From sequence record KY555144.1: a DNA stretch of 64,000 nt; one strand, given 5' to 3'. The notes under the pieces are model-generated. The model was not told the DNA's origin. It did not search any database and worked only from the letters and a program-made list of their open reading frames with translations. Below are positions 9,204-59,860 of this stretch, one piece after another; position 1 is the stretch's first letter; every line of letters begins with the position of its first letter. Both the position numbers and the translations under genes were made by a program.

Positions 9204-9277
9204 GAAAAGGGCCTCCGGCGTTGTCGTCGAAGGCCCTTCTAGCGAGTCGGTGTCAGGCTGTCAACACATGTCAGCCA
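9204..9277 (-). promoter_or_regulatory. family promoter cassette with SD-occluding hairpin
   Basis: TGGCT-N5-GTG-TTGACA-17-TAGAAG-GGCCTTC-GACGACAAC-GCC-GGAGGCCCTTTT-CATG. Confidence 0.88.
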
Positions 9278-9280
9278 AGA

Positions 9281-9892
9281 TCAGGCGGCGTTCGTCACCA
9301 GGGTTTCCAGGCGATCAAAGCCCAGGTCGAGGCGGCCCCACATCGACGAGGGCGTATGCGGCTTGACCACCTCGGTGAACCGCGCGCGCTCCTTCAGATA
9401 CATGCGGGCCATGGGGATGTTCGGCTGGCCGGTCGCCGGGTCCTTGATCGAGGCCTCGACATTGGCGATCCGGTCGGCGAGCTTGAGGATGCAGGCCTTG
9501 GGGTGCTCGCCCAGCTTGCGATAGATGTCCTCGTTGCGGGCCTTGCGGTTGGGGCCGATGCCCGAGACCGCCCAGACTAGCGCCGCGACGTCCTCGCCGA
9601 ACTTTTCCTTGAGCATCTCCAGCCGCTGCTCGGGCGTCATGTCGAGATGGGTGTCCTCGATCACGTCGTGCAGCTTGGCGGCGGCCGTCCAGGTAAAGCC
9701 CAGGAAGCCGTAGTCATCGAGGATGCGCTCGACCTTCTGGAGATGGTAGAGATAGGGCTGGCCGGCGTACTGCTGGTCCCCGTGAGCGGCGATGGCGAAC
9801 TCCGTCGGGTCTTCCTGGCGCAGCGGCGCGCCCGGCGCCGTCGGGAGGCCGGTCAGGATGGAGGCGAGTTGGTCGAGCGAGGCGTCAGACAT
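9281..9892 (-). CDS. HD-domain hydrolase, small alarmone hydrolase/Mesh1-like
   Basis: AH..Q...G.PY..H, LHDVIEDT, FG..VA.LV, LKLADRIAN motifs; no synthetase domain. Confidence 0.85.
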   Translation of the reverse strand: MSDASLDQLASILTGLPTAPGAPLRQEDPTEFAIAAHGDQQYAGQPYLYHLQKVERILDDYGFLGFTWTAAAKLHDVIEDTHLDMTPEQRLEMLKEKFGEDVAALVWAVSGIGPNRKARNEDIYRKLGEHPKACILKLADRIANVEASIKDPATGQPNIPMARMYLKERARFTEVVKPHTPSSMWGRLDLGFDRLETLVTNAA

Positions 9893-10298
9893 GGGGCTTC
9901 TCGGAGATCGGGGTGAAGACTTCCAGGCCGTCGACGATCTGCATCAGATGCGTCGGCGGGTGGGCGGGATTGTAGCGGATGTAGCCGGCGAGGCCGCCGT
10001 CGATCATCGCCCCGCCCCGCTCCTTGTAGTCGTGCCGGAAGCGCGAGACCAGGAACGAACCGTCGGGCATCTCGATCGCCGAGAACTGGGCCTGTCGGAT
10101 CGAGGCCGCCGAGGTGATGTAGAGCCCGCCGCCCAGCGGATGGGTGAAGAGCCCGAAGTAGTTATCGTGGCCTTTCTCGCGGTCCGGCGTCTCGGTGTAG
10201 AAGACGTGGAACGGCCCCTCACGATCGGGGAGGTCGTAATAGCCGACGTACTTGGCGTTGTAGTGCTTTTCGGCCCCGGAGATGTTGATGCTGCTCAT
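9885..10298 (-). CDS. conserved phage hypothetical protein
   Basis: SRFRHDY...MIDGG motif; ATG 10298 overlaps the HNH stop. Confidence 0.8.
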   Translation of the reverse strand: MSSINISGAEKHYNAKYVGYYDLPDREGPFHVFYTETPDREKGHDNYFGLFTHPLGGGLYITSAASIRQAQFSAIEMPDGSFLVSRFRHDYKERGGAMIDGGLAGYIRYNPAHPPTHLMQIVDGLEVFTPISEKPHV

Positions 10299-10798
10299 GC
10301 GACCCTCAGGAATTCTCCCCAGGCGGGGAGGGCGTGCTTCAGATAGGCGGCGTGCGCCTCGTCCGGCGTCGTGTAGCACCCGAGATAGCGGTACACCCCG
10401 TTGATCGTGACCTGGGCCTGGAACGGCTTCGTCTTGCTCCGGCTCTTGGTCACACCCTTGGGAAGCGCGCCGACGTTCGGGCGGTTCACGAGGTTCTGGG
10501 ACCGCGTCGCCTTCCGGAGGTTCTTGATCCGATTGTTGCGCCGGTTCAAGTCCTTGTGGTCGACGTCGTGATCGGGCATCACCCCGTGATGGATCGCCCA
10601 GGCCACCTTGTGGGCGGCGATTTGAATTCGCCGGCCGCCATAGGAGACCTTCATCACTCGATAGCCGTCCTTGGTCACCGAGCCGCAGCGCTTGCGGGAC
10701 TTGGAGCCCCGCACGGTGATGGCGCCGGTGGCGGGATCGTACTTGTAGCGCGCCCGGAGGAAGTCGACCGGGATCGAAAACTCTGCATCCCCCGACAT
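10295..10798 (-). CDS. HNH homing endonuclease with AP2-like C-terminus
   Basis: AHKVAW...VDHKDLNRRNNRIKNLR..T..QN; FQAQV..NG..RYLG.Y.T..EAH.AY. Confidence 0.9.
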   Translation of the reverse strand: MSGDAEFSIPVDFLRARYKYDPATGAITVRGSKSRKRCGSVTKDGYRVMKVSYGGRRIQIAAHKVAWAIHHGVMPDHDVDHKDLNRRNNRIKNLRKATRSQNLVNRPNVGALPKGVTKSRSKTKPFQAQVTINGVYRYLGCYTTPDEAHAAYLKHALPAWGEFLRVA

Positions 10799-10802
10799 AG
10801 GA

Positions 10803-11042
10803 TTAGTCCTTCTGGGCGTGCCGCTTGAAGAGGAGGTAGAAGCCGTAGGCGACGAGCACCGGAATCCAGAGCAGGATCAGGGCCACGGTCTGACCGAGGG
10901 TCATGAAGAAGAACGCGGTCTTCCAGTCGTTGTTGTACCGGTTGTCGCGCACCGCATGGACTTTCGGATAGTCGATCGCATAGCGGTAGCCGGCGCGCGC
11001 GAGGCCCAGAAGCAGGCCGATGATGAAGTAGAGATCGGTCAT
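10803..11042 (-). CDS. small membrane protein
   Basis: Two hydrophobic segments. Confidence 0.75.
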   Translation of the reverse strand: MTDLYFIIGLLLGLARAGYRYAIDYPKVHAVRDNRYNNDWKTAFFFMTLGQTVALILLWIPVLVAYGFYLLFKRHAQKD

Positions 11043-11045
11043 GGC

Positions 11046-11312
11046 TTACTTCTCCGAGGCCTCGATCATCTTCTGGGCGCCGGCGTTCAGCTTCTTGCGC
11101 AGGAGCCAGAAGACCGGAATCCAGAACAGGGCGAACAGGCTGGCGGGCCAGAGGGCGCCGAGGGCCAGACCGGTGATGAAGACGAACCAGCCGTAGATGC
11201 CGAATTCGTCGAGGGTCCTGACCCCCATCTCGCGGACGAAGGTCGGGACGATGGTCGCGCCGGCGACCCACCATCCGATGGCCAGGAAAAGGCCGACGAG
11301 CCAGTAGAACAT
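11046..11312 (-). CDS. small membrane protein
   Basis: Two to three hydrophobic, Trp/Phe-rich segments. Confidence 0.75.
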   Translation of the reverse strand: MFYWLVGLFLAIGWWVAGATIVPTFVREMGVRTLDEFGIYGWFVFITGLALGALWPASLFALFWIPVFWLLRKKLNAGAQKMIEASEK

Positions 11313-11614
11313 CAGGGTTGTTCCTTCTCAAGACCCACGTCGGGGTCGTATTTCAGGATGACGCCGTCCTCGTTCCGGTGCTCCATCAGCGGGAACCCCG
11401 AGACGAACTGCGGCACGAAGAGGTCGCGGCGCGGCTGCTGGAGCCAGATCAGGCCGGTCTCGGCGACCACCGCGCGCTCGGCCGGGGTAAGCTCCCAGCA
11501 GGAGATCACGCCCTCGGGGCCGGTGTAGGTGTGGAGCGGCGCGACCGTGTCCTCGTTCCCCGGAGCGGGGTTCCAGACCTTGTTGGCGCCGGCGAAGTTA
11601 CGAGGGACGGCCAT
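11312..11614 (-). CDS. hypothetical protein
   Basis: L.TY...VISCWELTP.ER...TG.IWL motif; coupled stop/start. Confidence 0.8.
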   Translation of the reverse strand: MAVPRNFAGANKVWNPAPGNEDTVAPLHTYTGPEGVISCWELTPAERAVVAETGLIWLQQPRRDLFVPQFVSGFPLMEHRNEDGVILKYDPDVGLEKEQP

Positions 11615-11849
11615 CGGCGTTCTTGCCCTTGTTGACGAAATACCAGATCGCCAGGGCGATCAGGAAGCCGGGGACGCCCAGCGGCCATGCGATGGCCATG
11701 CCCAGCGCGGTGAAGAAGCCCAGCGCCACCGCGCCCGCCGCGTCGGCGAGCTTCAGGACCCCGGTGCGGCTTTCGTGCTTGATCGTCCAGATGGTCGCGA
11801 TAAGGCCGCTGACCACGCCCAGGATGATCGAGAAGATGATGTAATTCAA
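11598..11849 (-). CDS. small membrane protein
   Basis: TTG start overlapping the upstream TGA; strongly hydrophobic. Confidence 0.7.
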   Translation of the reverse strand: MNYIIFSIILGVVSGLIATIWTIKHESRTGVLKLADAAGAVALGFFTALGMAIAWPLGVPGFLIALAIWYFVNKGKNADGRPS

Positions 11850-12229
11850 AGCAGACCCGCCGCCTGCTTGGCGGCCTCCTTGGCGCGGACCTTGTCGGGA
11901 GACAGGCTCTTCACGCGGTTGATCTCGTCGGCCTCGCAGCCGTCGGCGCTGATGCCGAGATTTTCGCAGAGGGTGTAGAGCGACAGCAGCAGGCCGCCGA
12001 CCTCTTCCTTGACTTCGCCGACCGGGCGGCTGTAGGTCCAGTGCGCCTGCCGGATCACGTCCTCCAGGCTCAGGCCCTGGGTCTGGACGAGTTCCATGCA
12101 CTCCTCCAGGGTGCGGAAGGCCTGGATGCGTCGGTTGAAGACGCGGCCCGTCAGGACCTCCTCGACCCACTTCCAGCACCACGTCTGGCGCTTTGCCCGG
12201 TGCTCATGACAGGCGTCGACCTCGGTCAC
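11846..12229 (-). CDS. MazG-like NTP pyrophosphohydrolase domain protein
   Basis: R.LEE..ELVQ and EEVGGLLLSL..LC acidic helices; GTG start overlapping the upstream TGA. Confidence 0.65.
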   Translation of the reverse strand: MTEVDACHEHRAKRQTWCWKWVEEVLTGRVFNRRIQAFRTLEECMELVQTQGLSLEDVIRQAHWTYSRPVGEVKEEVGGLLLSLYTLCENLGISADGCEADEINRVKSLSPDKVRAKEAAKQAAGLL

Positions 12230-12372
12230 GATTTTCTCCAGTCGAACAGCGCCCAGAAGGCTTGGCGGGTGTCCCTGGTCCAGGACCAGGGACGGATCGC
12301 CAGGATGGAAAGGACGAGGGCGGCGGCGAGATAGATCAGCGCCGCCCGCGCCACGATGTCGAGGAATCCCAT
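12226..12372 (-). CDS. small membrane protein (48 aa, not in ORF track)
   Basis: MGFLDIVARAALIYLAAALVLSILAIRPWSWTRDTRQAFWALFDWRKS fills the gap exactly. Confidence 0.7.
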   Translation of the reverse strand: MGFLDIVARAALIYLAAALVLSILAIRPWSWTRDTRQAFWALFDWRKS

Positions 12373-12375
12373 GGC

Positions 12376-13608: not shown

Positions 13609-13674
13609 GGCGGGCTCCTTCTGTGGTGTCGTGATTTACGACTTTTGACCATGCTCCTCGGACGGTGTCAACAC
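13609..13674 (-). promoter_or_regulatory. family promoter cassette (rtcB)
   Basis: GTG-TTGACA (13671-13666), 18 nt, CAAAAG, then ACGACAC and GAAGGAG SD. Confidence 0.65.
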
Positions 13675-13851: not shown

Positions 13852-13867
13852 CTTGAAGGGGTACGCT

Positions 13868-16135: not shown

Positions 16136-16196
16136 GGGGTCTCCTTCGTTGTCGTCGGGCGTGACTTCTAGTTGGGTTCCTGGAGGCTGTCAACAC
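16136..16196 (-). promoter_or_regulatory. family promoter cassette
   Basis: GTG-TTGACA (16193-16188), 17 nt, TAGAAG, 8 nt, GACGACAAC-GAAGGAG. Confidence 0.88.
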
Positions 16197-18181: not shown

Positions 18182-18252
18182 GATCGGCTCCTCTCGCTGT
18201 CGTGAGGGAGCTTGTACGGGCTCACGCCGATGCTGTCAACACTCTAACGCCA
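18182..18252 (-). promoter_or_regulatory. family promoter cassette with SD-occluding hairpin
   Basis: TGGCG-N5-GTG-TTGACA-17-TACAAG; GCTCCCTC-ACGACAGC-GAG-A-GGAGC. Confidence 0.85.
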
Positions 18253-21480: not shown

Positions 21481-21553
21481 GAGGGTCTCCTCTGCGGTTG
21501 TCGTCACCCGCCTCTTAGGACAAGGCCGAAGCCTTGTCAACACATTCAAGCCA
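21481..21553 (-). promoter_or_regulatory. family promoter cassette
   Basis: TGGCT-N5-GTG-TTGACA-17-TAAGAG-6-GACGACAAC; spacer forms a GACAAGGC-TTCG-GCCTTGTC hairpin. Confidence 0.88.
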
Positions 21554-23435: not shown

Positions 23436-23503
23436 GGGACCTCCTGGTTGTCGTCGTGCGGCTTTTAGCCCCGATAGGTCAGGCTGTCAACACAGTGCAG
23501 CCA
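23436..23503 (-). promoter_or_regulatory. family promoter cassette
   Basis: TGGCT-N5-GTG-TTGACA-17-TAAAAG-6-GACGACAAC-CAGGAGG. Confidence 0.88.
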
Positions 23504-23723
23504 GCCGGGCGATATAGTCCCGCATCCGCTCGCTCGACGCATAGCGCCACGTCCAGGGGACCTGTTCGGGGCGCGCGCCGTTGAACTGGCAAAGCCATAG
23601 GAAGGCCTCCTCCGAGTGAGGCCAGTTCTCGGCGTCGGCCGAGAAACCGGTCATGCGGAAGCACGCCGCGACCTCGGCCGGCGTCAGGTTCGGGTCGCGC
23701 ACGGCCTTGAGCTTGACCTTCAC
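23487..23723 (-). CDS. hypothetical protein (start may be CTG 23816)
   Basis: Frame is open upstream to 23816; stop is the TGA of the next -35 box. Confidence 0.7.
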   Translation of the reverse strand: MKVKLKAVRDPNLTPAEVAACFRMTGFSADAENWPHSEEAFLWLCQFNGARPEQVPWTWRYASSERMRDYIARLAALC

Positions 23724-23799
23724 CTCCTCGGACGGCGCGGGTGGCGGGGGCTCGACCTCGTAGCCAGCCTTGCGCAGGAGCTTGATCGCGGCGGCGATC

Positions 23800-24048
23800 T
23801 CAGGACTCGGTTTCAGGTTTCCACTCCCCGCACCAGGAATTCATGTGGACCAGCGGGAATTCCGCCCAGCCGATCTGGTCGGGCGGGTTGTCCCCGTGGA
23901 AGCTGCCGCCCGTTCGCGCGGGGTGGTAGCGCGACGGGCCGACCTTGATCGAGGGCGGGAAGCGCCGGCAGTCGCCGTGCATCTGGACCGCGCCCGTCTC
24001 AAGGAAGAACCGGCAGGTCTTGCAGGATTGGCCTTCGGGCTGTCTCAT
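23800..24048 (-). CDS. small Cys-rich phage protein
   Basis: CKTCRFF...CRRFPP...WCGEW. Confidence 0.8.
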   Translation of the reverse strand: MRQPEGQSCKTCRFFLETGAVQMHGDCRRFPPSIKVGPSRYHPARTGGSFHGDNPPDQIGWAEFPLVHMNSWCGEWKPETES

Positions 24049-25329: not shown

Positions 25330-25388
25330 CAGGGCCTCCTCGTTGTCGTCGGAGGCCCTTCTATGCTGGCGTGAGAGTGTTGTCAACA
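25330..25388 (-). promoter_or_regulatory. family promoter cassette (near-identical subfamily)
   Basis: TTGACAACACTCTCACGCCAGCATAGAAGGGCCTCC-GACGACAACGA-GGAGGCCC-TGATG. Confidence 0.9.
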
Positions 25389-26459: not shown

Positions 26460-27190
26460 GGCTCTCCCCCTGGTGTCGTTTCAGCGCTTCTAGCCCTGCC
26501 AAGCAGAGCCGTCAACACATCAGCGCCACGCCAGACCCAGGATAGGCTCAGAACGAGGTCGCGGTCCTCATAGGCGGCGCTGCGCCCGGTGATCACCTTG
26601 ATCGCCGAGAGCGGGCCAAACCGCCAGAAGACGACCGTGCGCGAGTCGTTACGGCCCGGCAGATGCTCCAGCAGCACGCGGCGCTTGATCGCCAAATGTC
26701 GCTGCTCCCTGTGGAGGACGAGCGCGACCTTGCGCGTCGGGTCAGACCCGAACCACCGGCGCCAGTAGCCCGGATTGTCGATGTTCTCGAACAGCCGGCC
26801 GATCCGCTTGCTGACGGGGCGAAGCCCAGGCTCGCGCCGGCGCACGCTCAGCGGTGGGAAGGTGCAAGGCGGCCACTCCGGAAGCAGGCGCAGGCGCAGC
26901 CTCCGGAATTCCCACGCCGGCATGGCGTTGTCCTTGGTGTTGTTGCACGCCACGCAGGCCGCCGCCAGATTGCTCTCGTGGTTCGATCCGCCCTCGGCCC
27001 TAGCCTCCAGGTGCTCGATCGTCACCTCGTCGGGCTCCAGCTTGCCACCGCCCCGGCCGATCCGCCGGCGATAGGCCATCTGCCCTGTGCAATAGGTGCA
27101 GAGGCCACCCGCCTCCAGGAAGAGGCGGTGGCGGCGGTTCGGCGCGGCGGGCGGGAGCGGGTCCTGGACCAGCACCTCAGATGAGGACAT
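26456..27190 (-). CDS. HNH endonuclease
   Basis: CTYC...TIEHL.AR.EGGSN..SNL..AC..CNN.K. Confidence 0.85.
   Translation of the reverse strand: MSSSEVLVQDPLPPAAPNRRHRLFLEAGGLCTYCTGQMAYRRRIGRGGGKLEPDEVTIEHLEARAEGGSNHESNLAAACVACNNTKDNAMPAWEFRRLRLRLLPEWPPCTFPPLSVRRREPGLRPVSKRIGRLFENIDNPGYWRRWFGSDPTRKVALVLHREQRHLAIKRRVLLEHLPGRNDSRTVVFWRFGPLSAIKVITGRSAAYEDRDLVLSLSWVWRGADVLTALLGRARSAETTPGGEP
26460..26528 (-). promoter_or_regulatory. family promoter cassette (inside the 3' end of the HNH gene)
   Basis: TGGCG-N5-GTG-TTGACG-17-TAGAAG-7-ACGACAC. Confidence 0.8.
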
Positions 27191-29674: not shown

Positions 29675-29735
29675 AGGGTTCCTTCCGTTGTCGTCACCCG
29701 CGACACTAGATGGTCGCGGGTGCGCGTGTCAACAC
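29675..29735 (-). promoter_or_regulatory. family promoter cassette
   Basis: GTG-TTGACA-18-TAGTGT-7-GACGACAAC-GGAAGGA. Confidence 0.82.
29695..29722. repeat. perfect 10-bp inverted repeat enclosing the -10 box
   Basis: CACCCGCGAC-N8-GTCGCGGGTG. Confidence 0.9.
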
Positions 29736-31186: not shown

Positions 31187-31257
31187 GGAGGCCTCCTTGT
31201 TGTCGTCGAGGATGGCTTCTAGCCGGCCCAGGTCAGGTTGTCAACACTCGACAGCCA
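31187..31257 (-). promoter_or_regulatory. family promoter cassette
   Basis: TGGCT-N5-GTG-TTGACA-17-TAGAAG-8-GACGACAAC-AAGGAGG. Confidence 0.9.
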
Positions 31258-33616: not shown

Positions 33617-33872
33617 AGGTGATCCTATACGGGAGCCCGCCGACGCAGATTTTCCCGCGTCGGCCGTCGGCGGTGGTGAAGCGGAAGCCCTGGCGGCTCT
33701 TGGCGCCGGCGCAGGACCACCATGCGCGGTGAAAGCTGACGACCTCGGCGCCGGTGTCACGCTCGACCAGATGTCGAGCGTGACGCCCCTCCCAGGTGTA
33801 GGCCCAGACCCCGATGGCGAAGAAGACCAGAGTCAGGGAGCCATAGACGGCCCCTTTGACATAGTCCTCCAT
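33603..33872 (-). CDS. membrane-anchored small protein
   Basis: N-terminal TM segment; W.C...GF.F...G..G..C. Confidence 0.72.
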   Translation of the reverse strand: MEDYVKGAVYGSLTLVFFAIGVWAYTWEGRHARHLVERDTGAEVVSFHRAWWSCAGAKSRQGFRFTTADGRRGKICVGGLPYRITYGRD

Positions 33873-34249
33873 CAGGCCGCCACGAGCCCGGTGATCACGT
33901 CGGTGACGATGCGACGCTTCTCGGCCGGCATGCCCGCCAGCGCCAGGATCGTCTTGGCGCCGATCTCGGCGACGGCGGTCTCGACGTCGGCCCGGCCGTC
34001 GGTCAGGAACGCCGGATCGTCGACCGGAGGATAGAAGTGCCCGATGTCCTTCTTCAGGAACTGGGCCGCCTCATAGAGCTTCGAGGACGAGATGCGGTTG
34101 TGCCCGCGCTCGTACTTCTGGACCTGCTGGAAGGTCACGCCGATCGCCTCGGCGAGTTGGCCTTGCGAGAAGCCGGCCGTCTTGCGGGTGTCGCGCAGCT
34201 TGCGTCCCACATAGACGTCGACGGGGTGCGGGGTCTTGTCGTCAGCCAT
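33872..34249 (-). CDS. XRE-family HTH transcriptional regulator
   Basis: HPVDVYVGRKLR..RK..G.SQ.QLAEAIGVTFQQVQKYERG.NRIS.SKL (alphaproteobacterial XRE signature). Confidence 0.92.
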   Translation of the reverse strand: MADDKTPHPVDVYVGRKLRDTRKTAGFSQGQLAEAIGVTFQQVQKYERGHNRISSSKLYEAAQFLKKDIGHFYPPVDDPAFLTDGRADVETAVAEIGAKTILALAGMPAEKRRIVTDVITGLVAA

Positions 34250-35509: not shown

Positions 35510-35582
35510 GCGGCCTCCTTCTGTCGTTGTGTCGACATAAGCTCTAGCCGTGGTTTTCCGGCCTGTCAACACACAACCGCCA
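35510..35582 (-). promoter_or_regulatory. family promoter cassette
   Basis: TGGCG-N5-GTG-TTGACA-17-TAGAGC-7-GACACAACGACA-GAAGGAGG. Confidence 0.85.
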
Positions 35583-35588
35583 AGGGTC

Positions 35589-35620
35589 AAAAGAAAACCG
35601 CCGCCCCGAAGGACGGCGGT
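35589..35620 (-). terminator. intrinsic terminator
   Basis: Minus strand ACCGCCGTCC-TTCG-GGGCGGCGGT-TTTCTTTT. Confidence 0.88.
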
Positions 35621-35646
35621 CATGACAGAGCATGTCAGGAGGGACG

Positions 35647-37770
35647 TCAGACGTCCAGAGCGAAGGCCGGCGGGGAGACGTCCGGCTTCTGAATGATGAA
35701 TCCCCGATCCAAGAGGGGTGGGAAGACCTGCTTGAGCACGCCAGCCGCGACTCCAGCTTCCCCAGCGATTTCGGCGAACGTGAAGGCCTCGCGCTGGCCG
35801 GCGCTGGCGACGAACAGATCGTTGAGCGCCAGGATGACTGCGCCCGCCGGGCTGATCTCGTAAGCCATGTCGAAATTCGGGTCTTCCGACAGCCGTAGCA
35901 GGCCCTCGGCCTCCAGGTTCGCAATGAGCGCCTTGAGTTGGTCGACCTTGACCGCGCCGAGATGGGTTTGGATTTCCCAGGGCGCCGCCGGCTCCTCGGC
36001 GCGGACGGCTTGCAGCGTCGCGATCAAGGCGATCGCCGGCATAGCCCGCACGATCATTTCGTCGCCGTCCGTCAGGTCCGGGGCGTTGACCAGCAGATCG
36101 TTGATCACCGCGTCACCGTGGGTCTCGACATAGGTCCGCAGCCGCTTGAGGGCGACCAGGAAGTCGTCCTTGGTGATCGGCTCGATGCGGAAGGTCAGGA
36201 GCGGGTCGGTCGGAATCTCCGAGAAGTAGGCCCGACCCCGGTGGCTCCAGCCCTCGACCACATGCAGGAAGAGATCGATCGGCATGGCGACGGCGCCAAA
36301 GCCCAGTCGCGCATCGTCCGTCGCCTCCTCGACCTGCGCCAGGGCGTTATCGATCGCTTCGAGCGTGAAGCCCCCGACAAGGCCGTTTTCCGCCGCGTCC
36401 AGCACGTTGGCCGCTTCTTCGGTGCCGAGCCCCTCGACGACCATTTCCGAGGCCTCCTGAGCCGTTTCCTGCGGCAGGGCGTCGGCGAGCTTGCTCATCG
36501 CCTCGGCGACGCCGCTCGTGTCGAGTTCCAGCTTCAGGGCCAGCTTCTCAGGACGCGCCGAGTAGGGCACGCCCTGGATCACCACGGCGCCCAGGTCGCC
36601 GACGACGCGCTTGGTCACTTCCAGATAGGCGTAGCGCGAGGCGGCGTTGAGCAGCGACAGCCGCTCGAAGACGATCTGCTGCTCCTGCTCGCGCGACATG
36701 ATGCCCGTCTCCAGAATGAACAGCGGCTCGGAGCCGTCCAGCGGCGGCTTGGCCTCGCCGTCGTCTTCCGGATGATCCTCGTCGAACTCGGCGCCGCTGA
36801 TCGGCTCGCTCTCCGGCGGGGTGAAGCGGATGCCCGGCTCGCGGGGCGGTTCGGCGGGAGTGGCGTCGTCAAGGGGCATGTCGGTCCTTTGAGGCTTGGA
36901 GGTGATGAAGAGCGTGGTGAGATCGACGTCCCAGACCCCAGACCCATCGGTGAAGAGCGCCATGAAGGTCCCCAGGCGCGCGTCCCAGCGGACGGTCTGG
37001 ATCACGCCGTTGATCTCGCCATAGACGGCGGTCGCCCCGGCGAGCATGGCGTTCAGGGTCTCCACATGGGCGTAGCACTCGCCGAGCGTCGCGGGGCGCA
37101 CGGCGTGGAACGGGTATTGCTGATAGGCGCCCGGCGGCGAGACGAGGCGGACATTGACGTAGAGCGGCCCCAGATGGGTGTGGGCGTCGCGCAGGAAGCC
37201 GACCACGGTCTCCCCGTCGTTCTGGGTCGCCACCACAGGCATGCCGGCGCAGTTGGCGGTCAGGACCGCCGGATAGTCCTGGGGATAGGCCACGGCGTAA
37301 AGGTGGAGATGATCACCCCGGCGCTGGGCCTTCCAGTCGGCGACACACCAAGCCGCCACGCGCGTGGCCCCGAACTCCGGCGTCTCCTCGATCAAGACGC
37401 CGCCGTCCGGAAGGTCCGCTTGCCCAATATAAGGAACGACCTCGCTATGGCTGACGCTCCAGGCGGGCTTGGGAAATTGCGGGGTGATCATGAGCTTCTC
37501 GGTGAAGGTGAGATTGATGGCGTCGGCGTAGTGGACATACGGGCCGACCGGGGTGGTCCATGGCGGATCACCCTTGCGGATGTCCGACAGCGGCACCGCG
37601 ACGTGCCTGCCGTTGGGCTGGACGATGTCGGCCAGGATGCGCGGCGGCTGGTGCATCAGGGTCACGACGTGCCCCTCGCCCGCCTCGAAGGTGCGACTCT
37701 TGGGCCACCAGACCTTGGACCCGGTCCAGTGGATCGACTGGATGACAAGGTCCTGTTCGGTCCCGATCAT
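35647..37770 (-). CDS. large multidomain hypothetical protein (707 aa)
   Basis: Long biased ORF; acidic/Pro linker near the middle; C-terminal winged-helix-like segments. Confidence 0.85.
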   Translation of the reverse strand: MIGTEQDLVIQSIHWTGSKVWWPKSRTFEAGEGHVVTLMHQPPRILADIVQPNGRHVAVPLSDIRKGDPPWTTPVGPYVHYADAINLTFTEKLMITPQFPKPAWSVSHSEVVPYIGQADLPDGGVLIEETPEFGATRVAAWCVADWKAQRRGDHLHLYAVAYPQDYPAVLTANCAGMPVVATQNDGETVVGFLRDAHTHLGPLYVNVRLVSPPGAYQQYPFHAVRPATLGECYAHVETLNAMLAGATAVYGEINGVIQTVRWDARLGTFMALFTDGSGVWDVDLTTLFITSKPQRTDMPLDDATPAEPPREPGIRFTPPESEPISGAEFDEDHPEDDGEAKPPLDGSEPLFILETGIMSREQEQQIVFERLSLLNAASRYAYLEVTKRVVGDLGAVVIQGVPYSARPEKLALKLELDTSGVAEAMSKLADALPQETAQEASEMVVEGLGTEEAANVLDAAENGLVGGFTLEAIDNALAQVEEATDDARLGFGAVAMPIDLFLHVVEGWSHRGRAYFSEIPTDPLLTFRIEPITKDDFLVALKRLRTYVETHGDAVINDLLVNAPDLTDGDEMIVRAMPAIALIATLQAVRAEEPAAPWEIQTHLGAVKVDQLKALIANLEAEGLLRLSEDPNFDMAYEISPAGAVILALNDLFVASAGQREAFTFAEIAGEAGVAAGVLKQVFPPLLDRGFIIQKPDVSPPAFALDV

Positions 37771-38192
37771 GCGGACGCCGCCGCGCCAGCCGGCGTCAAA
37801 CCGTAGATGGTGGGGCCTCGCGGCGACTTGCCGATCGCGACCACTTCCAGATAGCCCATATTGTTCAAAGCCTTTGCCGTTTCATGATCGGGATGGTCGG
37901 TGTAGACGTTGAGCCGCCCGCCCTCGCCCATCGCCTGGGCGGCGCGCAGAAGGCTCGCCTCGGCTTCGGTCAAGGTGACCAAGGCGACGTCCTCCAGCGC
38001 CACGTCGATCACGCAGGTCTGACCCTGGTGAACGAACTCGATAATCGCCAGCCGGCGATAGGTCCCCGGCAGGACCGCGAGGCAGACGCCTCGGACCTCG
38101 ACCTTCTGGCGGGCGGTGATCGGGAGATAGAGGCTCGTCTTGACGGCCTTGCCCTTGAGGGACAGATGCTCGTGCGTCGCCAGCGGGATCAT
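37767..38192 (-). CDS. hypothetical protein with C-terminal winged-helix-like segment
   Basis: LTEAEASLL...AKALNNMGYLE...YGLTPAG. Confidence 0.75.
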   Translation of the reverse strand: MIPLATHEHLSLKGKAVKTSLYLPITARQKVEVRGVCLAVLPGTYRRLAIIEFVHQGQTCVIDVALEDVALVTLTEAEASLLRAAQAMGEGGRLNVYTDHPDHETAKALNNMGYLEVVAIGKSPRGPTIYGLTPAGAAASA

Positions 38193-38434
38193 GGCTCGAC
38201 CTTCCGGACAGTGTAGGATAATTCGTCGTGGACGCGACCGTCGAAACTAGCCTCGTAGCCGGGGCCGAGTTCGGCCAGGATGCGCGCCTCGATCTCGGCG
38301 AAGTCGATTTTCGCCATCGCCTGTTCGGCCGCCCGCATCTGCTGGAGGAAGCCGTCCTTGATCTGGCGCCCCGCCTCGGTGCGGATCGGGATGTTCTGGA
38401 TCGGCGGCTCGGATTTCGACAGACGCTCGCCCAT
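38189..38434 (-). CDS. hypothetical protein
   Basis: Coupled ORF; DFAEIEARILA motif. Confidence 0.72.
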   Translation of the reverse strand: MGERLSKSEPPIQNIPIRTEAGRQIKDGFLQQMRAAEQAMAKIDFAEIEARILAELGPGYEASFDGRVHDELSYTVRKVEP

Positions 38435-38982
38435 CAGGCCCTCCGGCGATAGACCCGCACCGGGCGGGTGGGGAGGCGTTTCTCAGGCGGCTTGTAGGCG
38501 ACCAGGGCATGGCTGATGCAGTAGACGCCCGCCTCGGCGCGGCATCCGCAATGGCCAAAGTCCGGCGAGTTCGGGTCGCCATAGGGCCAGCGGCACATTC
38601 CGCGCTTGAGTTCGGCCGTCGCGAACAGCCGCGCCGGGCGCGGCGGGATGACCGCCGTCCCTTCAGGGACCAGGGCGAGCTTAGGCTTGGCCGGCGGAGC
38701 GGGCTTTTCGACCTTCTTGGGCTTACGCGCCGTGGCCTTCTTGACCTTGCGGACCTGGATGCCCAGGCCGCGCGTCTTCTTGCGGCGGGCGGTCGGAGGC
38801 GGAACCTTCTCGCCCAGTTCGCCGGCGGCCTTCAGTCGGTCGGCCTTGCCGCAGACGGCGCTCTTGGTGCGCGGCACGCTCAGGCGCTGACCGATCTCCT
38901 TGGTCCCGACCGGCTCCGCCCAGAGCTTCTTGAGCAGGGCGATGTCCTCGTCCGGCCAGTCGGAATTCCGCTTCTTCACCAC
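38434..38982 (-). CDS. gcrA: GcrA cell-cycle regulator homologue
   Basis: W.DEDI.LLKKLW.E.....EIG..L...TKSAV.GK.DRL; basic linker; EL..GMCRWPYGDP..PDF..CG.....YC..H..AY. Confidence 0.92.
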   Translation of the reverse strand: MVKKRNSDWPDEDIALLKKLWAEPVGTKEIGQRLSVPRTKSAVCGKADRLKAAGELGEKVPPPTARRKKTRGLGIQVRKVKKATARKPKKVEKPAPPAKPKLALVPEGTAVIPPRPARLFATAELKRGMCRWPYGDPNSPDFGHCGCRAEAGVYCISHALVAYKPPEKRLPTRPVRVYRRRA

Positions 38983-39169: not shown

Positions 39170-39219
39170 CTTCCCCTCGAATTTGGCGGCACCCTAGAGG
39201 AGCGTTCGAGTGTTGACAA
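39170..39219 (-). promoter_or_regulatory. leftward promoter at the strand switch
   Basis: TTGTCA (39219-39214), 17 nt, TAGGGT (39196-39191). Confidence 0.55.
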
Positions 39220-39253
39220 GCACCAATGTCGCTGGCTTTCGAGTGTTGACAAG
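39205..39253. repeat. 16-bp direct repeat, 33-bp period
   Basis: TTCGAGTGTTGACAAG at 39205-39220 and 39238-39253. Confidence 0.95.
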
Positions 39254-41227: not shown

Positions 41228-41482
41228 ATGCTGACCAAGGACGAGATCACCTTCGCGGGCCTGATCAAGGCCATGGAGGACGCCCGACGCACCGCCAAGG
41301 CGGCGGGCGATCTCGTCAGCACGGCCGAGATCGCCCGCTGGTTCAAGGAACACGCGCCGATCATCCGGGAGGTCCGCGACAAGGCCGAGGCTGACGAATT
41401 CGACGCTGGCGCGAGAGTGTTGACAACCTCTGAGGAAGGGGCTAAAGACACCCTCGACGACAGCGAAAGGAGCCTGCCTTGA
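41228..41482 (+). CDS. hypothetical protein
   Basis: 84-aa ORF whose last ~25 codons are a promoter cassette. Confidence 0.72.
   Translation: MLTKDEITFAGLIKAMEDARRTAKAAGDLVSTAEIARWFKEHAPIIREVRDKAEADEFDAGARVLTTSEEGAKDTLDDSERSLP
41407..41478 (+). promoter_or_regulatory. family promoter cassette
   Basis: TGGCG-N5-GTG-TTGACA-17-TAAAGA-7-GACGACAGC-GAAAGGAG-TTG. Confidence 0.85.
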
Positions 41483-44540: not shown

Positions 44541-44611
44541 TGGCGTGAAAGTGTTGACAGCCTGAAGGGACTCCTCTACACCCACGCTCGACGACAACGA
44601 GAGGAGTTCCC
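44541..44611 (+). promoter_or_regulatory. family promoter cassette
   Basis: TGGCG-N5-GTG-TTGACA-17-TACACC-7-GACGACAAC-GAGAGGAG. Confidence 0.85.
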
Positions 44612-48338: not shown

Positions 48339-48397
48339 CGTTGACAACACTCTCGCGCCAACATAGAAGGGTCCTCGACGACAACGAGGAGGCTTCG
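48339..48397 (+). promoter_or_regulatory. family promoter cassette (near-identical subfamily)
   Basis: TTGACAACACTCTCGCGCCAACATAGAAGGGTCCTC-GACGACAAC-GAGGAGGCTTCG-ATG. Confidence 0.9.
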
Positions 48398-49843: not shown

Positions 49844-49911
49844 TGGCGTTCTTGTGTTGACAAGGCCGGCGGCGCTGGCCTAGAACGTCGTGGACGACAA
49901 CAGGAGGGACC
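49844..49911 (+). promoter_or_regulatory. family promoter cassette
   Basis: TGGCG-N5-GTG-TTGACA-18-TAGAAC-6-GACGACAAC-AGGGAGG. Confidence 0.87.
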
Positions 49912-54862: not shown

Positions 54863-54863
54863 C

Positions 54864-55909: not shown

Positions 55910-55911
55910 CG

Positions 55912-56607
55912 ATGCTCTATGTGTTCGGGGATATCCACGGCCGGCTCGACCTCCTGGAGAAGGCGCGGCACGAAATCCGTGTACGCGGCGACTGCACCCA
56001 GATGATCTTCCTCGGCGACTATGTCGATCGCGGCCCCGACAGCAAGGGCGTCGTCGAGGCGGTGATGGCGCTCCAGGACCAGGGCGAGATCGCCCTGATG
56101 GGCAACCATGAGGAAATGATGCTGACCGCCTGTCAGATCAAGTCCTACAACGCCATGTCCAAACTCTGGGTGTCGAACGGCGGCAAGCAGACCCTGAAGT
56201 CCTACGGGGCCGGCGACAATGCCTGGAACGCCAAATGGGACCTGATCCCCCAGGAGCATGTCGACTGGATGGCGCGCCTCAAGCCGATCCACGAGACGCC
56301 GGGACGGGTGTTCGTCCACGCGGGCCTCGCGCCGGGCGTGTCGATCAAAATGCAGGAGGAGGAACACCTGCTCTGGATCAGGGACAAGTTCCTGAACGCG
56401 CCGGCCGACAAGTTCGAGAAGCATATCGTCCACGGCCACACCCACACCCATGCGCGCAAGAAGATCGAAGAGCCCGAGCTTCTCGCCCACCGGACCAACC
56501 TCGACACCGGGGCCTTCTACACGGGCGTCCTGGCCGTCGGGGTGTTCGATCCGGACGGCTATGGCGGACCCGAGGAGGTGCTGTTGATCCGCGAGGACGA
56601 CGCATGA
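55912..56607 (+). CDS. calcineurin-like metallophosphoesterase (Ser/Thr phosphatase, lambda-PP-like)
   Basis: GDIHG, GDYVDRG, GNHE, FVHAG, VHGHT, NLDTGA motifs. Confidence 0.93.
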   Translation: MLYVFGDIHGRLDLLEKARHEIRVRGDCTQMIFLGDYVDRGPDSKGVVEAVMALQDQGEIALMGNHEEMMLTACQIKSYNAMSKLWVSNGGKQTLKSYGAGDNAWNAKWDLIPQEHVDWMARLKPIHETPGRVFVHAGLAPGVSIKMQEEEHLLWIRDKFLNAPADKFEKHIVHGHTHTHARKKIEEPELLAHRTNLDTGAFYTGVLAVGVFDPDGYGGPEEVLLIREDDA

Positions 56608-57179
56608 TCCCCGACTTCGTCCAGAAGGCGCGCAAACTCCTGCGGCTCTACGGGGACAAGCCGAAGGTCAAGCCGTTCGACCCGTCCGCTCCGCTCGGGG
56701 GAAGTGTGTCTTCGCCGCCCCTCCCGGCGGCGCCGTCTCTATCCTCCAACCACGGGTTCTGGGGCGGCCCTGGCGGCGGCTCGATCCACGTAGGCTCCGG
56801 CCATGCGACCGCCATGGGCTCGGGCGGGGGCGGTAGCACCCAAATCCTGGTCTACAACGGCGGGACGGTGGGCTGGGCGACCATGCCCCAGGCCGTGGTC
56901 ACGGAGGTCAAGACGGTCAGCAAGACGCGGCCCGGCCTGACGGCGGGAGAGGACGAGGTCATCACGACCATGGTTCGCTATGGCGATGTCGAACTGGTTC
57001 TGGAGCGCGATCGCAAGTTCGCTTTCGTGCGGCACAAGATGGAGCTTGCCTATCCCCGCGTCTCGGGCCGTATGCTCAAGTCCTTGATCAAGAAGGGCTA
57101 TCTGAAGGCTATCGAGCATGACGAGATGGGTGGCCCGCAGGTGGCGGTAGTCGTGGCGGGGAAGGTCGCGGTCTGCTGA
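56604..57179 (+). CDS. hypothetical protein with Gly/Ser/Pro-rich N-terminal half
   Basis: ATGA overlap; low-complexity region then a helical domain ending LKSLIKKGYL. Confidence 0.72.
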   Translation: MIPDFVQKARKLLRLYGDKPKVKPFDPSAPLGGSVSSPPLPAAPSLSSNHGFWGGPGGGSIHVGSGHATAMGSGGGGSTQILVYNGGTVGWATMPQAVVTEVKTVSKTRPGLTAGEDEVITTMVRYGDVELVLERDRKFAFVRHKMELAYPRVSGRMLKSLIKKGYLKAIEHDEMGGPQVAVVVAGKVAVC

Positions 57180-57186
57180 ATTTTGT

Positions 57187-57256
57187 TGGCGCGAGAACGT
57201 TGACAGCCTCGGCGTGGTGTCATAAAAGCCTCCTCGACGACAACGAGGAGGCCCCC
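57187..57256 (+). promoter_or_regulatory. family promoter cassette with perfect SD-occluding hairpin
   Basis: TGGCG-N5-ACG-TTGACA-17-TAAAAG; GCCTCCTC-GACGACAAC-GAGGAGGC. Confidence 0.9.
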
Positions 57257-57676
57257 ATGGCTTACGCAATTCCGGACCTGAGCACCTACACGTTCCACGA
57301 CCCCAAGGTCGAACGGTTCGCCAAGGCGATGATCTCGACGATCGAGACCGCCCAGACCATGCTCACGGCCTTCGCCAACGATCTCGCCGACAATCCTCTT
57401 CAGGCGTTCGAGCATAGCTACGGCGCCAAGATGGCCGCCGCCCACAGGGACGTCGCCAAGGGGCTGCTCAACGAGGTTCTCGACGCGCTGCTGCATGGTC
57501 AGGACAAGACCTGGGCCTACATCGGCCAGGACCTGCGCGAGCGGCTGATGTATCGCGTGATCTACGCGGCCTCGAACCCGCCGCGCTCGACCAACGCCGA
57601 GAGCAACGACATGGCCCGCTTCGTCCTGCGCGCCGAGGCCGACATGCTCGACCGCATGACCAAGAGCCGCTTCTGA
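57257..57676 (+). CDS. hypothetical helical protein
   Basis: First gene after a cassette. Confidence 0.85.
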   Translation: MAYAIPDLSTYTFHDPKVERFAKAMISTIETAQTMLTAFANDLADNPLQAFEHSYGAKMAAAHRDVAKGLLNEVLDALLHGQDKTWAYIGQDLRERLMYRVIYAASNPPRSTNAESNDMARFVLRAEADMLDRMTKSRF

Positions 57677-57990
57677 TGCGGATCGTCGACTTCGCGACGT
57701 TCGTGACGCTTCCGGCTGGGACCCTCTACCAGGAGATCGACCAGTACGGGAGCCCCATCAGCGCCCTGGCGATCCGCCACGACGTGCTGTTTGACGGCGA
57801 TCGCCCGTTCGACTTCATCTACGAGGAAATCCTCTACCAGACGGCCGACGGCTTCCTGGGCGACCCGCCGAAGCTGGCCGAGTTGGGGACCAAGCGCTGG
57901 GGGCTCTTCGATGACGAGACCCTGTTCATCGTCTACGAGACGCAGGACCGCGCCCGGCTGGCCAAGATCATCCTGGGAGACGCCGCATGA
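57676..57990 (+). CDS. conserved phage hypothetical protein
   Basis: MRIV...F..LP.GTLY...DF...F.VYE..D. Confidence 0.8.
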   Translation: MRIVDFATFVTLPAGTLYQEIDQYGSPISALAIRHDVLFDGDRPFDFIYEEILYQTADGFLGDPPKLAELGTKRWGLFDDETLFIVYETQDRARLAKIILGDAA

Positions 57991-58370
57991 AGCCGCTCGA
58001 CGAACGCATCCGCGACGCGATCGACACCCCGCGCCCGGCCTGGATCGAGCGCGTCGGGAGCCGCTATCAGGTGATCACCAAGGGCGTGCCGTTCCCGAAC
58101 ACGCGCAATCCGGTCGGCAAGACCTGGGCGCTGCGCTCCGGCGCCCTGACCTACGTTCGCCAGCAATACCTCACCCTGCTGGAGGGCGACTGCCCGCTGC
58201 CCGCCCCGACCCAGGAAGAGCGCGACGCCTATCAGAACGAAGGGCGCGAGCGCCGCGCCGCCGTCGAGCAACTGTCGATGGAACTGGACCGGCCCTATGC
58301 CGAGGTCTGGCGCGCGGTCCGCAACCTGGAGGCCAAGGGCCTGATCCGTTTCGAGGAGGCTCGCCCATGA
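57987..58370 (+). CDS. protein with C-terminal HTH
   Basis: EQLSMELDRPYAEVWRAVRNLEAKGLI. Confidence 0.75.
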   Translation: MKPLDERIRDAIDTPRPAWIERVGSRYQVITKGVPFPNTRNPVGKTWALRSGALTYVRQQYLTLLEGDCPLPAPTQEERDAYQNEGRERRAAVEQLSMELDRPYAEVWRAVRNLEAKGLIRFEEARP

Positions 58371-58588
58371 CGTCGCAGACCCAGAGAACCCTCATCCTGT
58401 CCGGCGTGGGCTTCTTCATCGGCTTCATGCTGGTGTTTGGCTTCATGAGCGTCTCGCAGGCCTCCTACAACCAAGGCTATCGAGACGCCAAGACCGACAC
58501 GCGTCGGGACGAGCCGGCGTGCTTTACCTCCCAGCGCTGCTACCTGGGCCAGGACGCCAACGGGCGGTGGTTCATCGAGCCGAAATAG
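58367..58588 (+). CDS. small membrane-anchored protein
   Basis: SD GAGGAGG; TM segment then YNQGYRDA. Confidence 0.75.
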   Translation: MTSQTQRTLILSGVGFFIGFMLVFGFMSVSQASYNQGYRDAKTDTRRDEPACFTSQRCYLGQDANGRWFIEPK

Positions 58589-58589
58589 T

Positions 58590-58657
58590 TGGCGTTTAAG
58601 TGTTGCCAAAGCCGAGGCACTCGGCTAGAACACGCCCGACGACAACGAGGAGGCCCC
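58590..58657 (+). promoter_or_regulatory. family promoter cassette (variant -35)
   Basis: TGGCG-N5-GTG-TTGCCA-17-TAGAAC-6-GACGACAAC-GAGGAGG. Confidence 0.85.
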
Positions 58658-58864
58658 ATGCCACACTTGAGCCAGCAGCCCTTCACCTTCGACTTCACCA
58701 GCGACGCCCTGCGCGCGGCGCTCGAAATCGAAAAGGGCGCCACCGAATCCTACCGCTACGAGACGATCTTCGTCTTCAACACCGAGCGCGAGATCATCGG
58801 GACCCAGGTCCGCGTCATGGACGAGGAGGGCTTTTTCGAGGCCTACGTGGCGGGGGAAGCCTGA
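58658..58864 (+). CDS. small acidic hypothetical protein
   Basis: First gene after a cassette. Confidence 0.8.
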   Translation: MPHLSQQPFTFDFTSDALRAALEIEKGATESYRYETIFVFNTEREIIGTQVRVMDEEGFFEAYVAGEA

Positions 58865-59232
58865 TGCAGCATCTTGACCCCCGCATCGGCTACCTGAACT
58901 CGGGCGTCTACTACGCCTTCGTCGACGGCTACGACAAGCCCGAGACGCGCGGCACGCTCGAAGAGGTCGAGATCGCCCTGGGCCTGCGCAAGGCTCCGCC
59001 GGCTCCGACCAAGCGCATCGTCGCCGCCCAGCCGGCCGTCAAGACCTACTCGGTCCACATGCGGTTCGAATATCCGGGCTGGAGCTACGTCGACGGCATC
59101 ACCTACGACGGTATGCTCGGCCGCACGAAGGCCGAAGCGATCCGCAACGCCCGCGCCGAGGCCTTTGCCGACGGTCACCTCGGCGTCGGCCAGGGTCGTG
59201 TGTGGTTCAAGGCCACGGAACAGGACGCCTAG
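58864..59232 (+). CDS. hypothetical protein
   Basis: TGATG overlap; GTLEEVE.ALGL, then Y.V...TKAEAIR.AR pattern. Confidence 0.78.
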   Translation: MQHLDPRIGYLNSGVYYAFVDGYDKPETRGTLEEVEIALGLRKAPPAPTKRIVAAQPAVKTYSVHMRFEYPGWSYVDGITYDGMLGRTKAEAIRNARAEAFADGHLGVGQGRVWFKATEQDA

Positions 59233-59466
59233 ATGAGCCGCATCCGTGTCATCGATCGCGACGGGTTCATGCAGGGCTGGGTCGACGCCCGCGTCGGCCT
59301 GCCGACCTATTCCGGCCCCGTCACCCGCTGGACCAAGAAGGGTTCGTTCTGGACCACCGGAGCCGATGGCGAAGAACGCCTGTGGAAGGCCGGCAACCAC
59401 CAGCCCTGCGTCTACAGGAGCAAGCTCCGCAAGAGCGATATCATCCACGAGCGACGGGAGGGCTGA
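59233..59466 (+). CDS. hypothetical protein
   Basis: Coupled 77-aa ORF. Confidence 0.72.
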   Translation: MSRIRVIDRDGFMQGWVDARVGLPTYSGPVTRWTKKGSFWTTGADGEERLWKAGNHQPCVYRSKLRKSDIIHERREG

Positions 59467-59467
59467 C

Positions 59468-59785
59468 ATGGGCCTGCTGAGCATCTATCTGACGGGCGCG
59501 GCGCTCACCGGCGTGGCGACGGGCGTCTACCTTTTCAAGTTCCGGGCGCCCGCGACGCATGAGACCTACACCACCACCTGGGGCTATGTCGAAACCGACG
59601 ACGTCAACGAGACAGGCAAGCACCTGGGGGCGATCCTCCTGATGGCGCTCTTCTGGTTCGTCATGGTCCCGATGGGGATCGTCATGGGCCTCTGGCATCT
59701 CCTGGTCCGCGCCGTCGACAAGGCTTGGCGACGGCGCACGACGCGCCGCGAGAAGACGCACGTCGGCACCCATCGCTATCTGTGA
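59468..59785 (+). CDS. membrane protein
   Basis: Two hydrophobic segments, basic tail. Confidence 0.75.
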   Translation: MGLLSIYLTGAALTGVATGVYLFKFRAPATHETYTTTWGYVETDDVNETGKHLGAILLMALFWFVMVPMGIVMGLWHLLVRAVDKAWRRRTTRREKTHVGTHRYL

Positions 59786-59801
59786 TCGTCGCCAGCCCGG
59801 C

Positions 59802-59860
59802 TGGCTTCAGTGTGTTGACGGCGCGTCGATCGCCCGCTAAGAAGGGCTGACGGTCACGCT
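59802..59860 (+). promoter_or_regulatory. family promoter, divergent leader
   Basis: TGGCT-N5-GTG-TTGACG-17-TAAGAA; leader ACGGTCAC; preceded by a GCCAGC-CCG-GCTGGC hairpin. Confidence 0.78.

Follow-up and report, generated by a model that had tools for sequence, protein, structure and literature searches.

We analysed a 64,000-nucleotide stretch of sequence record KY555144.1 (the window) in which a short DNA element recurs directly upstream of the -35 box of promoters. The window corresponds to record positions 124001-188000 of Caulobacter phage Ccr5 (100% identity), a phiCbK-like Shapirovirus with a genome of 218.7 kb and terminal repeats of 10.5 kb. Its genes, the majority of which are annotated as hypothetical, run leftward up to about position 39170 and rightward from 39305, and include those for a phage homologue of GcrA (38434-38982, minus strand) and for the XRE regulator TgrL (tgrL, 33872-34249, minus strand). 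The promoters under study share the layout Y-TGGCK-N5-GTG-TTGACA (K being G or T), a spacer of 16-17 nt, a (G)CTAGAA-like -10 box, a GACGACAAC leader, a GGAGG ribosome site and the start codon; we refer to those with TGGCK in this position as class I. The element is real, keeps a strict phase with the -35 box, is conserved amid drifting flanks and is limited to this phage lineage. In our view it is probably a cis-regulatory element peculiar to this lineage, joined directly to the -35 hexamer of early promoters of the sigma-73 type in phiCbK-like phages.

Occurrence, phasing and conservation of the element

An earlier note on this DNA had listed 14 promoters carrying TGGCG or TGGCT at a fixed distance from the -35 hexamer. 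All 14 are present at the coordinates and on the strands it gave, and 13 of them read exactly TGGCK-N5-GTG, whereas the site at 57187 (plus strand), TGGCGCGAGAACG, has ACG where GTG is expected. The -35 box itself varies at 58603 (TTGCCA) and at 26515 and 59815 (TTGACG). Matches to TGGCKN5GTG number 25 in the window, compared with 5.5 +/- 2.2 in shuffled sequence, and none of 100 shuffles reached 25. These matches comprise 13 class I promoters, three opposite-strand copies in repeated promoter cassettes and nine others; the nine lie about 1.6 standard deviations above the mean shuffle count and below the largest shuffle (11), and are compatible with chance. TGGCK is found 13 nt upstream of 13 of the 74 TTGACR sites (binomial P ~1e-17), and when only TTGACA sites are counted, 11 have it at offset 13 and just one at another offset within 6-40, bearing out the strict phasing proposed in the earlier note. 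The two blocks occupy -48..-44 (TGGCK) and -38..-36 (GTG), with an AT-rich centre between them at -43..-39.

The whole Ccr5 genome contains 18 such promoters, 16 at record positions 133-193 kb and the others at 52 and 114 kb. When promoters were picked by their -35 box, -10 box and leader only (about 26), TGGCK was present at -48 in 16 and in inverted form in four more. Among the 18 paralogous promoters genome-wide, a set selected on TGGCK, T-48, G-47, G-46 and C-45 have as high an information content as the -35 hexamer. N5 is 62% AT, compared with 44% for -60..-49 and 34% for the genome, and the invariant bases are nevertheless G and C; at -39 only A or T occurs, and 16 of the 18 promoters have a purine at -40. 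The resulting consensus is YTGGCK-(YKARW)-GTG, with the full form TTGGCGCGAGAGTG-TTGACA. TGGCK and GTG(TT) form neither inverted nor clear direct repeats, and there is no dyad symmetry that would suit a dimer. The core promoters are themselves near consensus: 16 of 18 have an exact TTGACA, unlike the weak or absent -35 box expected of activator-dependent class II targets, and the CTAGAA-like -10 box fits GCTANAWC, reportedly the Caulobacter sigma-73 consensus of Malakooti et al. from 1995. A promoter scan of the E. coli type fails to detect these promoters, since the -10 box in Caulobacter is without the final T.

Comparison of orthologues delimits the conserved region. We determined per-position identity for 14 promoter pairs between Ccr5 and Rogue or BL10, whose genomes are ~76% identical. 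Identity is 0.48 upstream of -50, 0.95 in TGGC, 0.86 at K, 0.77 in N5, 1.0 in GTG, 0.99 in the -35 box, 0.58 in the spacer and 0.84 in the -10 box. The footprint has an abrupt start at -48 (edge -48/-49). The retention of TGGC and GTG next to a drifted flank and spacer indicates that the element is real and under selection, as had been supposed. Brevundimonas phage Bajun carries the identical consensus TTGGCGCGAGAGTG-TTGACA at at least four promoters, in addition to TGTCC and CGGCG variants, and its DNA can be aligned with that of Ccr5 over the ArdC gene only. A scan of IMG/VR (2.9 million viral contigs) recovered the recurrent architecture only in the phiCbK-like phages Karma, Rogue and BL10; an earlier scan of this database with a 14-base pattern was swamped by chance matches. 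Bacterial genomes of 185,579 species (one genome each) gave 55 scattered single matches, with no recurrent use and none in Caulobacter genomes. Use of the architecture by the host was rejected: the single Caulobacterales match is the rpmG promoter of a metagenome-assembled genome, whose relatives keep TGTG-TTGACA and not TGGC. The motif is not mentioned in the literature that we searched.

Two phages of sister genera carry other sequences at this place. The TGGC block is absent from the 100 kb of Colossus that we examined, where promoters have RAGAG-TTGACA instead; these have G at -36 and -38 in common with the Ccr5 element, without TGGC. In the examined 165-190 kb of CcrSC the element is likewise absent, and promoters read GCRAGAAAACKG-TTGACA, with an A-tract like a proximal UP subsite. 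Each sister genus has a sequence of its own directly 5' of TTGACA (AGAAAAC(G/T)G in CcrSC, RAGAG in Colossus), and Colossus promoters also share TTTCT-TTACAA around the -10 box.

Inverted copies and other promoter families

The earlier note had held that three near-identical cassettes lack both TGGC and GTG and define a second promoter class. This proved wrong, as the cassettes, with the layout TTGACA-ACACTCTCGCGCCAAC-ATAGAA, have a spacer (ACACTCTCGCGCCAA) that reads TGGCG(C/T)GAGAGTG on the opposite strand, which is the element in its best-consensus form. The inverted copy lies at -28..-16, between the -35 and -10 boxes, and mirrors the class I arrangement across position -32. The cassettes produce the pattern matches at 25367 (plus), 48348 (minus) and 62408 (minus). 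The first is the promoter of the ArdC-like gene at 25359-25386 on the minus strand and consists of TTGACA, the reverse complement of TGGCGTGAGAGTG (25367-25379, plus) and ATAGAA; the others lie on the plus strand at 48341-48368, with the element TGGCGCGAGAGTG at 48348-48360 (minus), and at 62401-62428, with the element at 62408-62420 (minus). The promoter of the gp225c-GcrA operon (39192-39219, minus) is also of the inverted type, with TTGTCA, the reverse complement of GAGCG-ttcga-GTG (39200-39212, plus) and CTAGGG. In Rogue, GAGCG and GTG of this promoter are preserved and four of the five N5 bases are changed; therefore, the inverted copy is also under selection. On the opposite strand of the cassettes TGGCG..GTG is followed by TTGTCA, yet no copy has a -10 box there, which rules out divergent antisense promoters. 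A division into two promoter classes is also too simple, since four promoters with the same core and leader have GTG only (7261, 13671, 16193 and 29732, all minus) and the one at 39219 (minus) represents a GAGCG inverted type.

Promoter type can differ between orthologous genes. The ArdC promoter is of the inverted type in Ccr5 and of class I in phiCbK and Karma, and the promoter at 57200 is of class I in Ccr5 and of the inverted type in Rogue and BL10. Because the ArdC swap coincides with the border of a known gene insertion or deletion between Ccr5 and phiCbK/Karma, it points to exchange of promoter-leader modules. In public RNA runs (assembled Logan contigs), depth is flat and contigs break at the cassette repeats.

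At least 19 window promoters of all types have the leader motif (G)ACGACAAC downstream of the -10 box and ahead of the ribosome-binding site, about 40-50 nt 3' of the -35 box, for instance at 9213-9228 (minus), 48377-48385 (plus) and 57236-57244 (plus). It is also present in Rogue and Bajun (ACGACG/ACGACAAC), and Colossus has the form GACGA(A/T)CAAC. Some copies stand in a hairpin loop with the GGAGG site as its 3' arm; RNAalifold found no consensus structure across 19 leaders.

Other promoter families of Ccr5 differ upstream of the -35 box. A second family has GTCGTGAATC abutting TTGACA at about 25 sites (0-1 mismatch), at record positions 19-116 kb and 203 kb and nowhere in the window. It serves structural, lysis and replication genes and has GANTC (GAATC) at -40..-36, no clear -10 box and often GTTAACC(AT) downstream. 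Promoters of the terminal repeat (record 1-10508) have the CtrA box TTAAC-N6-TTAAC followed by CTAGGGT, consistent with the activation of terminal-repeat genes, phiCbK gp005 and gp018, by CtrA (PMC9437464). The terminal repeat also holds about 11 tandem copies of a GC-rich 22-bp unit (record 2204-2424). Since the GTCGTGAATC, CtrA-box, Colossus and CcrSC promoters carry other sequences there, the 13 bases 5' of the shared -35 box are, on comparison of these sequences, class-specific within Ccr5 and genus-specific among its relatives. The different sequences at the same place in other families of the same genome, and in the sister genera, count in favour of a dedicated regulatory element. Taken together, the element, CtrA-box and GTCGTGAATC families suggest that in this phage temporal class may be encoded in these 13 bases. 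The tgrL gene, which is reported to be early with a peak at 15 min (PMC10688885), lies in an operon behind the class I promoter at 35569.

In the Caulobacter cell-cycle model phiCbK serves as the standard phage, and the cis-logic described for it so far consists of the terminal-repeat CtrA boxes only. The element marks about 18 early promoters per genome, which makes it a precise, mutable handle on the coordination of the early programme. It also offers a concrete DNA target for testing host factors, the terminal-repeat proteins and the GcrA homologue of the phage, which has long gone without an explanation.

Candidate readers and the role of the element

We considered known systems and phage proteins as readers of the element. 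A sigma-54 promoter (TGGCAC-N5-TTGC) was rejected, as the sequence here is TGGCK-N5-GTGTTG, has no GC at the required distance and is followed by a full sigma-73 -35/-10 pair. The CtrA box (TTAA-N7-TTAA(C)) is absent from class I promoters, and canonical GcrA recognition through GANTC was rejected too, with no GANTC in the element and 0.18 per 130-bp promoter region, which is the genome rate; the remark in the earlier note that the element matches neither CtrA boxes nor GANTC therefore stands. The XRE protein that it had named as a candidate, TgrL, fails its own chromatin immunoprecipitation (ChIP) matrix. Scored at fixed register, this matrix (S2 table of PMC10688885, CAAC core) gives -5 to +3.5 bits at the element versus 17.4 for the matrix consensus, and 190 window positions on both strands score >6. 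The low-information half of the matrix reads TTGGCGTG; the informative CAAC core and G at position 15 misfit. TgrL homologues are also present in Colossus and CcrSC, both without TGGC in the parts examined. Pfam detected no DNA-binding domain in 20 proteins (those of 19 terminal-repeat genes and gp021 just beyond the repeat), and the proteins shared with Bajun, together with the terminal-repeat proteins, yielded no DNA-binding candidate besides GcrA and XRE.

The phage GcrA homologue, also on the earlier list of candidates, retains DNA-binding and sigma-interacting domains. It is present in every element-bearing lineage (Shapirovirus, Poindextervirus and Bajun), absent from Colossus and not found in CcrSC, the last two being without the element in the parts examined. 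Host GcrA, a monomer with a flexible linker, uses asymmetric sites on the polymerase-distal face of the DNA (PMC9976885). Its boxes lie at -20 +/- 1, -30 +/- 2 or +5..+30 and none further upstream, the limit of -32 being attributed to linker length (PMC9976885). The inverted copies of the element are centred at -22, near this range, and the class I copies at -42, outside it. Residues of the GcrA recognition helix differ between Ccr5/Rogue and Bajun, though the DNA consensus is identical. Co-occurrence across lineages speaks for phage GcrA as the reader, and the lack of GANTC, the known boxes not lying so far upstream and the unconserved recognition helix speak against it. The Bajun homologue (35548-36255 of the examined Bajun sequence) has two tandem N-terminal DNA-binding repeats; the Caulobacter phage and host proteins have one.

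Most likely, the element is bound by a protein that recognises its sequence. Three features together indicate that a protein reads the bases themselves: TGGC varies no more than the -35 box, the edge of the footprint is sharp and the consensus survives without flanking similarity. We infer that the reader is a protein other than core RNA polymerase. The bipartite form, in which a helical turn separates two GC-rich blocks and the centre is AT-rich, is typical of contact with two successive major grooves. A candidate protein would touch these grooves at TGGCK and GTG across the AT-rich minor groove at -43..-39 and would act on RNA polymerase at the -35 box, from which joint control of all early operons would follow. 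Overall, the evidence leans towards a trans-acting factor. Given such a factor, our expectation divides about evenly between a stimulatory protein that contacts sigma or polymerase and a repressor or dual-function regulator responsible for early shut-off or deferment. Because the -35 box, spacing and -10 box are already near consensus, the promoters would not depend absolutely on the factor, and such consensus-grade cores speak against an obligatory activator. Classical class II contact is made less likely by the spacer copies, which do not count against a GcrA-like tethered factor.

Several observations weigh against a dedicated DNA-binding protein. No protein is tied to the element, and the site is non-palindromic, unlike those of most dimeric regulators. 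The same consensus occurs in phages whose proteins are 30-50% identical, which calls for a very conserved reader that could be host RNA polymerase. The AT-rich N5 lies at the proximal (UP) subsite of the carboxy-terminal domain of the polymerase alpha subunit (alpha-CTD), and G at -36/-38 is common to Colossus promoters that have no TGGC.

If the bound protein only stimulates, a very early phage protein at -42 would act on sigma-73 RNA polymerase from a class II-type or sigma-tethered activator site, and the lead candidate would be phage GcrA with an altered specificity that does not depend on methylation. The half-sites of CRP at a -41.5 site lie close to -48..-44 and -38..-36, a likeness in favour of this explanation, and the element does sit where class II activators and the alpha-CTD contact DNA, as the earlier note had pointed out. 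The co-occurrence of phage GcrA with the element, its two retained domains and the tandem DNA-binding repeats of the Bajun protein fit as well; the centres at -22 and -42 would extend the roughly 10-bp series begun by the asymmetric, polymerase-distal sites of the monomeric, flexibly linked host protein at -20 and -30 (PMC9976885). This activator reading is nonetheless tentative: GANTC is neither in the element nor enriched in these promoters, no GcrA box is known upstream of -32, the recognition helix has changed under a constant DNA consensus, and co-occurrence amounts to about one phylogenetic event. The promoters are also consensus-grade, one of them driving the early gene tgrL (PMC10688885), and classical class II contact does not explain inverted copies in the spacer. 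That phage GcrA, or another sigma-73-tethered monomer, traded methyl-GANTC for an unmethylated, asymmetric and phage-specific box on the polymerase-distal face, forward at -42 and inverted at -22, seems to us unlikely; if true, early operons could be boosted in swarmer cells, which have no host GcrA, and on phage DNA unmethylated by CcrM. Just as tentatively, the element may be an operator at which a repressor or dual-function regulator would shut off or defer the early operons, acting beside or across the -35 box in class I and from the spacer in the inverted type. Being near consensus, these promoters need restraint and not help, both arrangements overlap DNA contacted by polymerase (class I abuts the -35 box and the inverted copy lies in the spacer), and expression of ~41% of phiCbK genes is highest by 15 min and falls afterwards (PMC10688885). 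A 'lytic deferment' model puts CtrA-activated terminal-repeat genes, whose function is not assigned, upstream in the cascade (PMC9437464), and CtrA boxes are seen there. However, the site has no dyad symmetry, strict phasing is odd for operators unless the -35 box belongs to the site, the terminal-repeat proteins match no DNA-binding family, and a protein bound in the spacer need not repress, as in the case of GcrA (PMC9976885).

The remaining explanations do without a regulator. The element might be an intrinsic extension of the polymerase site, with the alpha-CTD on N5 and sigma region 4 or another surface on GTG/TGGC, making extra-strong early promoters with no added factor. Fixed spacing would be natural here, the AT-rich N5 centred at -41 coincides with the proximal UP subsite, and similar features recur elsewhere: a true A-tract in CcrSC early promoters, RAGAG with G at -36 and -38 in Colossus, and TGTG-TTGACA at the Caulobacterales rpmG promoter. 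The consensus is also identical across phages of two host genera with diverged proteins. We find this explanation doubtful, as no polymerase surface is known to recognise the individual bases of a GC-rich TGGC at -48..-45, the host rpmG promoter does not conserve TGGC, and the 185,579 bacterial genomes scanned show no recurrent use. The inverted spacer copy cannot make the same contacts, and Colossus and CcrSC infect the same host without TGGC in the parts examined. It is far less probable still that the block has no function of its own and was inherited with a promoter cassette spreading by duplication or recombination, as T4-type promoter-stem-loop cassettes do. Near-identical cassettes exist, RNA-seq contigs break at them, and promoter types swap at orthologous genes alongside gene insertions and deletions; yet the footprint has its sharp -48/-49 edge while spacers have drifted, N5 varies among paralogues around invariant TGGC and GTG, and the element is conserved in Bajun without flanking similarity.

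The element resembles several known systems in part. Class II sites (CRP/FNR at -41.5 and lambda CI at OR2 for PRM) likewise abut or overlap the -35 box, with two blocks about one turn apart and a centre near -42, and lambda CI shows that one protein can activate from -42 and repress a neighbouring promoter. The Ccr5 element differs in having no dyad symmetry, consensus -35 targets, inverted copies in the spacer and no known activator. An UP element, bound by the alpha-CTD with its proximal subsite at -46..-38, shares the fixed place next to the -35 box and the AT-rich central five bases, and CcrSC has an A-tract there; the invariant Ccr5 bases, in contrast, are the G and C of TGGC and GTG, which the alpha-CTD is not known to read. 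Caulobacter GcrA boxes (m6A-GANTC, YGAKTCG) resemble the element in being asymmetric, in their narrow range of positions, including the spacer, and in serving a monomeric sigma-tethered factor whose phage homologue co-occurs with the element; they differ in requiring GANTC, in a range that leaves out the class I position at -42 and in the recognition helix, which is not conserved among the phage homologues. Temporal promoter classes of phage T5 reportedly share their hexamers and differ in conserved blocks, including one near -43 (Gentz and Bujard, 1985). T5 is also a large lytic phage with long terminal repeats, host polymerase throughout and class-specific blocks, but its blocks are AT-rich and regarded as polymerase-intrinsic, whereas the Ccr5 block is GC-rich and bipartite. 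The marbox of MarA/SoxS/Rob is an asymmetric site of ~20 bp contacted by a monomer in two adjacent major grooves. It works in both orientations, according to how far it lies from the -35 box, and can overlap that box. It shows no sequence similarity to the element and is not known to occur between the -35 and -10 boxes, and no AraC-family protein was identified here. Finally, T4-type PeSL (promoter-early stem-loop) cassettes are repeated promoter-leader modules before gene blocks that undergo module exchange, as in Ccr5; they are not known to have a distinct upstream element, and the Ccr5 leader motif (GACGACAAC) has no conserved hairpin.

Individual promoter sites and neighbouring features

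The positions below cover the upstream block and the -35 box, which is TTGACA unless given otherwise. The class I sites on the minus strand are TGGCT-gacat-GTG at 9259-9277, which is kept in the orthologues of Karma, BL10, Rogue and phiCbK; TGGCG-ttaga-GTG at 18234-18252; TGGCT-tgaat-GTG at 21535-21553; TGGCT-gcact-GTG at 23485-23503; TGGCG-ctgat-GTG with TTGACG at 26510-26528; TGGCT-gtcga-GTG at 31239-31257, whose 13-mer is fully identical in BL10 and Rogue next to a diverged spacer; and TGGCG-gttgt-GTG at 35564-35582, the promoter of the tgrL operon. On the plus strand, TGGCT-ttcga-GTG at 39233-39251 forms the first rightward promoter at the point of divergence and is followed by TGGCG-cgaga-GTG at 41407-41425, which has the full consensus, TGGCG-tgaaa-GTG at 44541-44559 and TGGCG-ttctt-GTG at 49844-49862, which is TGGCC in the Rogue orthologue. 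Further downstream lie the variant TGGCG-cgaga-ACG at 57187-57205, the promoter that is of the inverted type in Rogue and BL10; TGGCG-tttaa-GTG with TTGCCA at 58590-58608; and TGGCT-tcagt-GTG with TTGACG at 59802-59820, which has no GACGACAAC leader. The four GTG-only sites, all on the minus strand, have no TGGCK at 7256-7264 and 13666-13674, GTGAG in its place at 16188-16196 (conserved in Karma, BL10 and Rogue) and CTGAC in its place at 29727-29735 (conserved in Rogue).

The class I element at 23491-23503 overlaps the 3' end of a short gene (23487-23723, minus). This gene and its surroundings (23504-23816) show DNA identity of 77-82% even with Colossus, CcrSC, CcrBL9 and CcrPW, and the rest of the 7-kb query has almost no match to these phages. 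Beside the GcrA gene, an open reading frame of 81 residues (38189-38434, minus) has its sole match in part of the family A DNA polymerase profile (PF00476, positions 120-170).

A strong intrinsic terminator at 35596-35621 (minus), with an 11-bp stem followed by a T-run, ends 13 nt before the TGGCG of the promoter at 35569. Because this terminator ends next to the promoter, the T-rich tracts just 5' of several elements may be terminator tails or stop-codon contexts (TGA and a T-run) lying outside the element. Short inverted repeats occur in the -35/-10 spacer of several class I promoters (21510-21534, 49863-49884 and 58609-58630), for example AAGGC-TTCG-GCCTT at the promoter at 21540.

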